DNA of 64,000 nucleotides. Origin: Podarcis bocagei. Taxonomy: Eukaryota. This document shows positions 11,304 through 15,517 of the stretch, in pieces (positions within the stretch are counted from its first letter, which is position 1; every line of letters begins with the position of its first letter). Location: the NCBI GenBank assembly GCA_964188305.1, contig OZ076886.1; one strand, 5' to 3'. The position numbers were made by a program, and so were the translations under genes. The notes beneath the pieces are model-generated. The model had not been told where the DNA came from. It did not search any database and saw only the letters and a program-made list of their open reading frames with translations.

Positions 11304-14300
11304 TAGTATGATTAGGACCTTTAAAGTAAAGCAAGAGGGGGAAAAAGAACTATTCTGAGTGAAGTCAATGTGACACAATTAAATCTAACCAGTGTCAAAA
11401 AATTGACTTTCTATCACAAAAATCTATTTTTTTCTGAGGCCCTGCAGTACGTCAGCTAGCTTGGAGTTGTAGTCCAAAATATCTGGATGAGCAAGACTGT
11501 ACCATGGGTATAAAGTAAAGCAGAGATCTACTTTGATCTGCTCTAATCCTGTCTAATAACAGTAGTTTGCTTTCAAGAGGCAAATGAAAAGAGATTTTGG
11601 CCGGGATTCATAACCCCCTCCATACAAACAGAAAACACACGATGTGTGTGAATAATACTTCCATTCCATGGCAGCCCCTTGAACCTCTTGGGTGCAACTC
11701 TGGGAGCTCCCTGCTTCAGGTAAGACTTTACACAGGTTGTAGGTATTGGATGCTACTGTTGGAAAAGAGCATGTTGTGCTTTAGATCTAAGCCTCCCCTT
11801 GCTTTAATTTCCTGGCAGGCTTTGTGAACAAATGGAATTTATAAGCAGCTGGCAGCCAATTAAAATGTTGTTATTTCTTAAACCTAATTGCTAAACCATG
11901 AATTCACTGATTCCAGCAATTAGCTTGAAGAAATGCAGAGGTGCTGATTTTTTAAAAAGGTGAATTTATTGGGGGGGGGGGGGGAGCATGGATGTGTTCC
12001 AAGAAGAACAGAGACGCACGCTCTAAAAAAGCAGCATGAAAAAGCAAGCCAGGCAATTTCAGGGAAATGGAGCTTAAAGTTGAATACCTGGTGGCCCACC
12101 AACACACAGGTACTTGAGTGACAATGGCTTTTCCATGTCTGCCTACAGAACAAAGTTCCCAGCAAATTCAATTTGCATTGAATTGGCAGGTTCATGGCTT
12201 ATTGCTCTTTTGCTGCAACAAAGCACTGTCAGGGTCATCGAAAAGACACAGTTGTCAGTGCTGGCCTGGATTAAAATAACTGCAAAACTAGTCTGTTCAC
12301 CCAAAGGAGGCTTTAGGCTTGTTTTTCCTTAAACAGCAGCTTCCCTCACACCTTCAGTGCAAACTGCTTTGGAAAAGAAAGAGTTGTAAAAGCAGTTTGT
12401 GATCTAGCTTGAGAGTCAACTGCTGAAAAGAGTAAAATATGCCACTTGGCTGACCCAAGCCAATTGTACAAGCCCACTCAGTTCTTTGGAGCCCAGCCAC
12501 CATCTCCCATCACTATACTGTGAATTATAGAGCAAGCTGGACAACTTTTCATTATCTTGGGATTTCTCTTAAAATATCCCCACAGTTAATCAATCTGTCC
12601 TCGCAAAACTGCATCCAAAATTGCATCTTCTTGACCTTCACTCCCAATTCCATTTCCAGAGCTAGAAACAAAGCCAGAATCTCTCTTCTGAATTATCAGG
12701 TGAAGCCACCACAAGGAAAGAACAAGCATGGAACGAGATTAAAGATATGCAACATCAGCATGCTAAATATTGAAGCCAACATAATAAAACATACATGTAT
12801 CATAAAAGCCCTTTTAGAAACAGGTGGTTTTCCAAAACAGAGCTGTACTTTACTGCGCCAAAATGTATGCTGAGTTAAGATAAAGTGGTAAATGAGACGG
12901 GGTTGGATACTTTTAACTTGTGAGTGTCGAGATATGAATGGCTAGACATGGTGCAATCTCAGCCATCTATTATTTAATGTAGTAATTCAGCTTTGAAGAC
13001 CATTTTTGGCTGTCTGGAAGTAATCAGATAAAGTAGGCAACAGATCCTTTGGTTATGACCTCAGCTGCACCCCAGTGCATGATGGGAAAGAGAACTGCGG
13101 AGAATGATCCTCCACCCTGGAAAAGCCTGGTGAAGTCATTTGGATGAACCAGATACATTAATATCACAGGAAACCCAGACAGTCTACCCAGTGTCTGACA
13201 TCACCATGCTGACATTGCAGAGTTGTTGAACAGCTGCCCCCCTCCCCATCAATGCATAGCTAGTTGAGATGCCTACATCTTTGCTAAGCAGATGTTTGAT
13301 CTCAAGCCAATGTAGTATCCAAGCCACATCTGAATCAGGAGCAGCTCTCGGAAAGGGACAAAGAGCAAGTTGGAAATTGAGAGCGTTATTTCCTACGTAT
13401 GCCACAGACCTGGGTTCTGAGGTTCAGACTACACTTAATAATTACATTTTCTTCACCAAGGCACTCCATTCTGAAAAATTAGGATACCTCTCTGGCCACC
13501 AGAAACGTACTGTTTATTATTATATTAATCTTTATGCCCCTGTAAATAACTTCCTGTGAGCTGTAATGAAAGAGAGCAAAACATGACAAAGTTCTGCAAT
13601 GGAAGCACACAATCCTAGTTAGCCACTTGTCTTTCTACTTGTTATTTCTACTATTTTATTGTCAGCCCCATGCTTTGAGATCTCGATATCTTAAATACTC
13701 ACTTCATATGCCAACAAAGACTAAACTGGAGCTATCAATCAGACCTTAGTGTTTACTTGGGATTAATTCTCTCTCTCTTTCTCTTTTTCTATTACATATG
13801 CATACTTGAGCATTATACACATATGAATCTGATTAAATATCTATGCATGCAGGATTAAGGATTCTGCCAGCGTCAGAAGTGGTTGCTGGGGGGTGGGGTG
13901 GGGATATAGTATAGCCTCCAAACAGCAACACACAAAAGTAGTGGGCAAAGCTCAGCATATGCAGCTCAGGATTCAAGCTGATGGAGCCGAAATATATAAG
14001 TGACTCATCTCTATTCCTCAGCAGATGCGGTGTTCCAATTAATCCTTAGCAAAGTATATCATTTGGTCATTTAAAATGTTTTACGTTCTTAAAGTTAAAA
14101 AGGTCACCCAATAAAAATGTGAACTTTTTTGTTTTGAACATGAATCCTTTCACGTGAATGACCTTTGCCCTCTGCCTCAAGCTCTCCTCACAGCATGGAC
14201 TTCAGAAGACTTGCTTTTTCACTTTGAACATCACACACCTAGTCATCAGCTAGGAGGAGAGTTGGCTGGCTGAGCACGTGCTGCATGGAAGCAATTATCA

Positions 14301-14507
14301 GCATTGCTAAGATGGTCTACATCTGGCTACAGCCACAAATGGTTGCTGCCTTACTGAACTCACCAGAACAATGCATCCCAATGACTACTGCATCAGAACG
14401 ACTGCCGTTAACACAAACTGATTTACTGCGTTGACCATCTTCTTATAACTTCTGTTAAGTTGTTTCCCACACACAATAGTCAGGTCTGTCTTACTTTAAT
14501 CAGAACA

Positions 14508-14891
14508 AAATAAAAAAATTCCTTCCAGTAGCACCTTAAAGACCAACTAAGTTAGTTCTTGGTATGAGCTTTCGTGTGCATGAACACTTCTTCAGATACA
14601 CTGAAACAGAAGTTGCCAGATCCTTCTATATAGTGAGAAGGTGGGGAGGGGTATTACTCAGAAGGGTGGTGGGAATGGGAGATTGGCAGATAGCTGAGAT
14701 GAGCCTGTTGACGACTCTTAACGACTGCAATAGGTCTTACAGGAAAAGGCAAGGGGTGAGAAGGTGAAAAATGGCTTAGTCATGTATAATGAGATAAGAA
14801 TCCAATGTCTTTGTTCAGACCAGGTCTCTCTATGGTTTTAAGTTTGGTAATGAGTTGCAATTCAGCAGCTTCTCTTTCCAGTCTATCTGTA
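14508..14891 (-). mobile_element. Penelope-like element 3' fragment (GIY-YIG C-terminus + pLTR-type tail)
   Basis: Minus frame DRLEREAAELQLITKLKTIERPGLNKDIGFLSHYT* resembles the PLE endonuclease end (R..AE...I..L.T..P.GLN); flanked by 15-bp direct repeat ACTTTAATCAGAACA (14493-14507 and 14892-14906). Confidence 0.85.
14562..14599 (-). ncRNA. Minimal type-I hammerhead ribozyme motif within the Penelope tail
   Basis: Minus strand GUAU-CUGAAGA-A-GUGU(ucaugc)ACAC-GAAA-GC-UC^AUAC: CUGANGA and GAAA boxes, stem I GUAU/AUAC, stem II GUGU/ACAC, UH cleavage site. Confidence 0.75.
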
Positions 14892-15330
14892 ACTTTAATC
14901 AGAACAGTGATACGTAAACGCCATGAGCCTACAGGATTTCCTTCCCCTAACTTATTTCCCCAACCCATGCATATCTCAGCACTGTTGATACACTCTGGAT
15001 TGCTCAAAGAGAGACCTTCACAACAACAAATTTTATAACTCTGAAGTGGCCTAGAATGAATGTAATGAAGTGGGAAGGATAGTGTCTAAGGCAATTGCTG
15101 AGAACAGGGAGTCTTTTACCTCCTTGGCAGAAGAAGTGAATAAACATTTATATTTATTGATTTAGACCATTTCAATGCCACTTAATATTTTAAAACAATC
15201 TCTAAGTGGCGTACAGAAAACTAAAGCAAATAAATTAAATTACACAGTGATTGGTGGTTGAAGGTGCCAACCAAAGCTTGTACTTAATTGAAAGTCAATG
15301 CTCGTAGGACGTGTGAGGTAAAGCACATAC

Positions 15331-15517
15331 CTTACTATCCAGCTTTTTCATGGTTACCAGATCCAAGGACTTCAGTGAGTGACCAGTTGGAGTGATGAAA
15401 TAAAGGCAGACATGGATTCTTGTATCATGATAATTAAAGAGGGAACGCCGGATTTTGAGCTCTTCTTGTAAGTAGTTTTCAAACTGCGTGTCAATGTAAT
15501 CTACTATCGGCCTGTAA
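15331..15517 (-). CDS. SEPTIN8: Septin-8 exon 4 ([20 protein letters not shown]...KKLDSK)
   Basis: 187 nt, TAG acceptor and GTATGT donor; septin core sequence. Confidence 0.97.

Follow-up and report, generated by a model that had tools for sequence, protein, structure and literature searches.

A minimal hammerhead motif in a SEPTIN8-like intron of Podarcis bocagei, very probably brought there by a recent, 5'-truncated Penelope-like insertion

Results

The Host Gene and the Motif within Its Intron

The DNA analyzed here, a stretch of 64,000 nucleotides (64 kb) from Podarcis bocagei that we call the window, carries on its minus strand the exons of a septin gene, which lie at ~20.3 kb, 17.27–17.44 kb, 15330–15516, ~10.5, ~8.4, and ~6.4 kb. 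The segment 15328–15624 matches the Pfam Septin family (E 1.4e-21), and when a single exon (15331–15516) was searched against solved structures, Septin-8 was its best match, ahead of Septin-11 and Septin-6. The intron of this SEPTIN8-like gene that concerns us is ~4.7 kb long and contains a minimal hammerhead motif. Because the septin exons are on the minus strand and the relevant exon ends at ~15330, the motif is in sense with the gene and lies ~730 nt past the donor, as a preliminary description of this DNA had claimed; the exon order is also consistent with that description's numbering of the intron as the fourth, and the motif is indeed part of every SEPTIN8-like pre-mRNA that is made from an insertion-bearing allele. 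The coordinates of the various features are collected in table 1.

Table 1. Features at the septin locus and in the insertion, in window coordinates
Feature	Position	Strand	Basis
Host septin exon (...KKLDSKV)	~15330..15516	-	Pfam Septin, structure match; donor ~730 nt upstream of motif
Target-site duplication, 5' side of element	14892..14906		Perfect 15-nt direct repeat; single copy in organism E
5'-truncated PLE-family retro-insertion (putative family label), 384 bp	14508..14891	-	Depth jump and loose ends, four species
ORF 3'-end remnant (...RLEREAAELQLITKLKTIERPGLNKDIGFLSHYT), last ~35 codons	14780..14886	-	Translation; stop 14780-14782
3' UTR / pLTR start	14600..14779	-	Sequence; TATATAG 14626-14632; pyrimidine tract and CAG ending 14601
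Minimal type-I hammerhead motif	14562..14599	-	Sequence; 38 bases
Private G-to-U substitution, helix II	14583..14583	-	Plus strand A; C in ~99% of family depth, four related species
Tail downstream of cut, 58 nt, T-rich end ...GGAAUUUUUUUAUUU	14504..14561	-	Loose ends 14504-14507
Target-site duplication, 3' side of element, ACTTTAATCAGAACA on plus strand	14493..14507		Perfect 15-nt direct repeat; single copy in organism E

Read on the minus strand, 14562–14599 is GUAU CUGAAGA A GUGUucaugcACAC GAAA GC UC^AUAC, which is letter for letter the motif originally described. Its short helix I consists of 4 bp, formed by GUAU (14599–14596) and AUAC (14565–14562), and both catalytic boxes are present: CUGAAGA at 14595–14589 and GAA at 14573–14571 (C3-U4-G5-A6-N7-G8-A9 and G12-A13-A14). 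The A at 14588 is an unpaired bulge that follows the first box, and G14587 pairs with C14574 (G10.1-C11.1). Helix II of this copy is GUGU/ACAC, 4 bp around a 6-nt loop, with a U.C mismatch in addition. Helix III is reduced to the palindrome AGCU (14570–14567), with A15.1-U16.1 and palindromic 15.2-16.2 positions, so that there is no closed helix III; H17 follows as C17 at 14566, and the predicted cut falls after it, between 14566 and 14565, where it had previously been placed. The minimal hammerhead ribozymes (min-HHRs) of metazoan Penelope-like elements (PLEs) have as their hallmarks two catalytic boxes, G10.1-C11.1, palindromic 15.2-16.2, a short helix I, and a long helix II (Cervera & de la Pena 2014, PMC4209133). 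All of the core features of the published PLE type, and those near the core, are present here, which bears out the description of the motif as a minimal hammerhead of Penelope type.

A relaxed descriptor modeled on the published definition (a 4-bp helix I, then CUGANGA with or without a bulge after it, a helix II of 4 bp or more with a loop of 3–8 nt, GAAA, a palindromic helix III of 0–4 nt, and UH) had a single match on both strands of the 64-kb window, at 14562–14599, and a simpler gapped pattern had the same outcome; the descriptor gave no match at all in 200 dinucleotide-preserving shuffles. Covariance and descriptor searches, which had been suggested as a check on the motif, gave different answers. 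The Rfam hammerhead models (types I/II/III, HH9, and HH10) matched nothing at the gathering score in the whole window, and nothing at E<=10 in the 600-nt slice 14300–14900, whereas the descriptor search finds its unique site. The silence of the Rfam models is to be expected, and does not count against the motif, because the motif has no closed helix III.

The Insertion That Carries the Motif

The hammerhead belongs to a larger unit which, in minus strand order, comprises an ORF's end, then ~180 untranslated nt, then the hammerhead itself, and last the 58-nt tail. This unit of 384 bp is bracketed by a perfect 15-nt direct repeat (ACTTTAATCAGAACA on the plus strand). Homology to the rest of the family, as judged by the loose ends of contigs at both limits, spans ~14886 to 14504–14507, and the five letters 14887–14891 at the 5' junction of the insertion are off the family consensus.

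When the 36-residue ORF remnant served as the query of an exhaustive HMMER search, just three short predicted proteins were recovered, of 89%, 80%, and 48% identity, which are encoded on contigs of <800 nt and align to the remnant at their own C-termini; the remnant is therefore the recurrent end of a repeated ORF. Longer family copies, seen as loose ends, extend upstream of 14886 in the same reading frame. Neither a GIY-YIG nor a reverse transcriptase (RT) domain was called by Pfam on the remnant and its three matches, these pieces being too short for Pfam. The putative label "Penelope-like" thus rests on the ribozyme type and on the architecture of the insertion, the family being known here from pieces without RT or GIY-YIG domains.

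Two further sequences are related to the insertion. An independent copy on an ENA metagenome contig (L002), which is taken to be lizard DNA, aligns with the 3' UTR up to the TATA region; over L002:351–697 it has the ORF end and UTR in common with the insertion but departs from it immediately past the TATA region, where it has no hammerhead, and goes on with the UTR a second time. The other is a predicted protein of 86 aa (P0002) in which an antisense reading of the hammerhead region (MSFCVHAHFFRYTETEV...; compare window positions 14564–14767, plus strand) is joined to the sense ORF end, and which therefore derives from an inverted (fold-back) pair of copies. A third sequence, L001, was rejected as a comparison copy, being too distant in the alignment.

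An Abundant Family and an Empty Site

Contigs of four related species (coded as organisms B, E, F, and G) were placed on 14150–15250 at 85% likeness, with between 8,709 and 21,064 contigs placed per run. In the four species the summed depth, which according to the tool's own warning is not to be equated with copy number, climbs some four orders of magnitude, from tens beside the element to 10^5–10^6 exactly over ~14504–14889/14891. In these species the bins of the hammerhead and tail have 3–5 times the depth of the remaining element, as would be expected because the family copies are 5'-truncated, and the depth profile marks the family as very abundant and made up of 5'-truncated retrocopies. 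Most of these copies end at 14504–14507; a subset continues with a shared sequence, and the full-length ones also continue. This combination of a preferred end with some copies running on is the pattern of tail initiation published for the anole PLE (PMC11167929).

Within the family the catalytic core and helices I and II are otherwise invariant at a 10% threshold, the one exception being C17, which is U in 16–28% of family depth; this variant is likewise allowed by the definition of the min-HHR. The copy in the SEPTIN8-like intron departs from the near-fixed letters of the family at just 2 of its 384 positions (14583 and 14831), and it must therefore be young. The first of these departures lies in helix II, which had been described as one substitution away from a perfect palindrome. 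This was correct, since 14583 is another letter in ~99% of family depth: the U found here turns the fifth pair of helix II into a U.C mismatch, and the letter of the family majority restores it. The private substitution weakens helix II of this copy; it need not abolish activity, a 4-bp helix II being enough in canonical hammerheads.

The contigs also record something of the family's history in the other species. Organism G has near-fixed alternative letters (90–98% of depth) at 14680, 14697, 14748, and 14778, which are rare in B, E, and F, an indication that species have subfamilies of their own and that recent bursts occurred separately. In some contigs of E and F the homology runs through part of the tail and then begins again at 14599 (a back-join to 14510–14567), with one letter added in between; such contigs represent short tandem arrays of the hammerhead unit at other places in those genomes.

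In organism E one contig of 1,881 nt (record 17) joins 14892–15250 to 14492–14167 without a gap and has one copy of the duplicated 15-mer, which makes it a precise empty site; compared with the window, its flanks show 11 differences in 685 positions (~1.6%). Contigs of organism B that approach from either flank break off at the duplication's edges, leaving 8 and 7 letters unaligned, and these overhangs and the repeat add up (8 + 15 + 7 = 30) to the k-1 overlap that neighboring unitigs share; one contig of organism F ends at 14892, where 15 letters are left unaligned. Judged from these contig ends, the site is probably empty in B and F as well. In organism G the flanks are barely covered. A comparison of the orthologous site in related species, which had been put forward as a check, thus finds the element absent in E by direct observation and probably absent in B and F. 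The precise empty site in a relative means that the insertion is young and lineage specific. Since the insertion is young and its site is empty in a close relative, the intact ribozyme core reflects youth and not selection at the SEPTIN8 locus. A conserved intronic ribozyme of the host is ruled out by the same empty site in organism E and, probably, by those in B and F.

The Partner Question

A hammerhead of this kind requires a partner because the motif alone cannot close helix III, and the earlier claim that it could be active only as a dimer, its helix III being reduced to AGCU, agrees with our reading. Searches by pattern, descriptor, and BLAST found no second min-HHR and no other family copy in the 64-kb window. 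In nearest-neighbor calculations, the double-hammerhead fold, which consists of an intermolecular AGCU helix and two intermolecular 4-bp helices I, has a predicted energy of -5.3 kcal/mol versus -9.7 kcal/mol for two free monomers. The preferred dimer (-17 to -31 kcal/mol) is predicted to be an extended duplex, built on the palindrome of helix II, in which helix III cannot form and which would be non-catalytic. Such energies leave out the tertiary contacts of the hammerhead and any protein chaperones and are to be read as indicative.

The native context may complicate matters further. In the predicted fold, a segment just upstream of the motif can pair with the CUGAAGA box: over 14589–14613 of the minus strand, ACUUCUGUUUCAG can pair with CUGAAGAAGU and would so sequester the CUGANGA box. 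The letters of this upstream segment (ACUUCUGUUUCAG) show little variation in the family.

Discussion

Origin and Probable Fate of the Motif

We consider it very probable that the motif is a PLE terminal-repeat hammerhead that entered the SEPTIN8-like intron by a recent, 5'-truncated retrotransposition, and that the solo copy left there is most likely inert. The RNA of the element would have been reverse-transcribed from an internal "tail" site, and the copying would have halted within the last ~35 codons of the ORF; the presumed outcome is the 384-bp insertion between 15-bp target-site duplications, its sense orientation with respect to the host gene being presumably a matter of chance. The ribozyme of the parent element presumably acts as a dimer, possibly aided by the element's protein, in processing element RNA that is multimeric or has terminal repeats. 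At the SEPTIN8 locus, where the copy stands alone, lacks a partner, and has a weakened helix II, it would most likely be inert in vivo, to be spliced out and degraded along with the rest of the intron. The locus is, in short, an ordinary young and lineage-specific 5'-truncated PLE insertion with a slightly degraded solo hammerhead, and neither the sequence comparisons nor the folding models gave a sign that this hammerhead would cut host RNA.

The insertion could nevertheless affect its host gene by other means, either through a TATA-type promoter of its own or through acceptor- and donor-like sites that would make a cryptic exon; we regard this as distinctly improbable. A TATATAG (14626–14632, minus strand) is situated ~30 nt upstream of 14599, and it is at 14599 that ~40 contigs per species, in the four related species, start their homology, next to AT-rich unrelated sequence. 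These coincident positions suggest an internal promoter whose putative transcripts would start at helix I. The segment from there to the end of the tail (14599–14504, 96 nt) is the 3–5 times deeper part of the element, and it suggests a candidate class of ~96-nt mini-insertions, for which reverse transcription would start at the first tail site. As to splicing, a pyrimidine tract followed by CAG (cuucuguuucag, 14601–14613, minus strand) ends at 14601, one base before helix I, and an AAG/GUGCUA (14531–14539, minus strand) puts a donor-like junction at ~14536, 65 nt downstream of 14601. Read in the host sense, the pair resembles the borders of a cryptic exon that would enclose the hammerhead, and in the PLEs of Drosophila virilis the 5' end of helix I marks the end of an intron (PMC4209133). 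This support, however, consists of sequence resemblances, and with thousands of copies in existence any strong effect would be selected against.

A more dramatic role for the motif was envisaged in the preliminary description, in which transposon expression was held to be coupled to cleavage of the host intron. The intronic copy would pair in trans with the hammerhead on another pre-mRNA or on a PLE transcript and cut the SEPTIN8 pre-mRNA, with the consequence that host expression would be responsive to the level of transposon RNA. The core is intact and in sense, the self-complementary AGCU of helix III makes dimerization the sole route to an active fold (PMC4209133), and the family is so extremely abundant that partner RNAs should be found in the nucleus. 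We think it very unlikely all the same, and the claim of coupling is unsupported by our results: the insertion is young and missing in a close relative, which speaks against any conserved role, helix II of this copy is weakened, the window holds no partner, and the trans fold is unfavorable, the double hammerhead lying ~+4 to +7 kcal/mol above the free monomers with the non-catalytic duplex strongly favored. The potential pairing of the CUGAAGA box with its upstream segment in the native context weighs against it too.

The published record is hardly more encouraging for such a coupling. Single PLE min-HHRs gave no detectable cleavage in vitro, and even in cis their dimers and trimers cleaved weakly and mostly at non-physiological Mg2+ (PMC4209133), and the anole PLE has no RNA-seq ends at its hammerhead site (PMC11167929). 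As to the effect of a cut, PMC2995048, with reference to Dye et al. 2006 and to the Bentley laboratory, has it that an intron cleaved by a hammerhead in vivo splices as efficiently as an intact one, so that a slow intronic cut leaves splicing unimpaired, and that only a fast HDV ribozyme aborts it. A milder version, to which we attach just as little probability, is that solo sense intronic PLE hammerheads in general, the SEPTIN8 copy included, are cut at a low rate through transient pairing with the family's very abundant hammerhead-bearing RNAs, perhaps with help from the protein of the element; bursts of PLE expression would then amount to a small, genome-wide tax on host pre-mRNAs. Finally, a chance match to a permissive descriptor, for which one might cite the shortness of minimal descriptors and the lack of any Rfam score, is refuted to the point of near impossibility by the empty shuffles (0 of 200) and by the depth of the repeat family, whose core letters are invariant at the 10% threshold over thousands of contigs in four related species.

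In itself the locus is of minor importance: ribozyme-bearing retroelements of this kind are already known, the copy is one among thousands of recent ones, and it has no conservation, no pairing partner, and a helix II below full strength. Its value is that of a well-delimited example, in which the target-site duplications are clean, a sister species has the empty site, and the private mutation is known, and such an example is suited to asking whether a solo PLE hammerhead in an intron is ever cut in vivo.

Comparison with Known Systems

HH9 and HH10, the intronic hammerheads of amniotes that were reportedly described in 2010 (de la Pena & Garcia-Robles), are said to be canonical, efficient, and monomeric ribozymes that have been conserved at orthologous sites over the long term. 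The motif studied here resembles them in its sense orientation inside a protein-coding gene's intron. It is unlike them in being minimal, partner dependent, missing in a close relative, and without a match to Rfam.

The non-LTR retrozymes of animals (PMC7229834; bioRxiv 10.64898/2026.07.22.740005) also share features with it. Their hammerheads are type-I and dimeric, they are kin to the terminal repeats of PLEs, and monomeric derivatives of them are frequent, many being intronic. In Xenopus tropicalis ~44% of the copies that resemble retrozymes or PLE pLTRs overlap introns (bioRxiv 10.64898/2026.07.22.740005), and intronic copies are therefore commonplace. Retrozymes are, however, tandem non-coding repeats that give rise to circular RNAs, whereas here a single unit is joined to the end of an ORF. 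With one hammerhead in 64 kb and the unit attached to an ORF remnant, the identification of this insertion as a non-LTR retrozyme is ruled out.

The metazoan PLE min-HHRs (PMC4209133) share with the motif the CUGANGA and GAAA boxes, the G10.1-C11.1 pair, a 4-bp helix I, the palindromic AGCU, and the habit of occurring massively as dispersed single motifs; most of those on record are single copies from truncated elements, and reptiles are among their hosts. They differ from it in helix II, which has 4 bp and a mismatch in the SEPTIN8-like intron, 5 bp and a CAUG loop in the majority of its family, and 6–8 bp in the published PLE consensus families (7–8 bp in Schistosoma). The lacertid family to which this insertion belongs is not among the genomes shown in that study (PMC4209133).

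A further comparison is with PAc, the Poseidon PLE of Anolis carolinensis, which has a hammerhead in its terminal repeat (PMC11167929). In that element the hammerhead needs the element's own protein and is dispensable for insertion in vitro, and reverse transcription initiates internally at the "tail" (PMC11167929). As far as a comparison by description of PAc can go, the two differ in that the ORF remnant here ends ~180 nt upstream of the ribozyme. The main ORF of PAc starts in helix II, whereas the AUG in loop II of the present motif opens a frame of 9 codons only (14552–14581, minus strand), which reads MHTKAHTKN before its stop, crosses the cleavage site, and recalls the PAc arrangement. 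An AUG inside helix II or loop II is nonetheless common to both, and the present insertion, as a putative squamate PLE with a hammerhead that would belong to its terminal repeat, also resembles PAc in that insertions end at a "tail" shortly downstream of the ribozyme and in that the targets are AT-rich.
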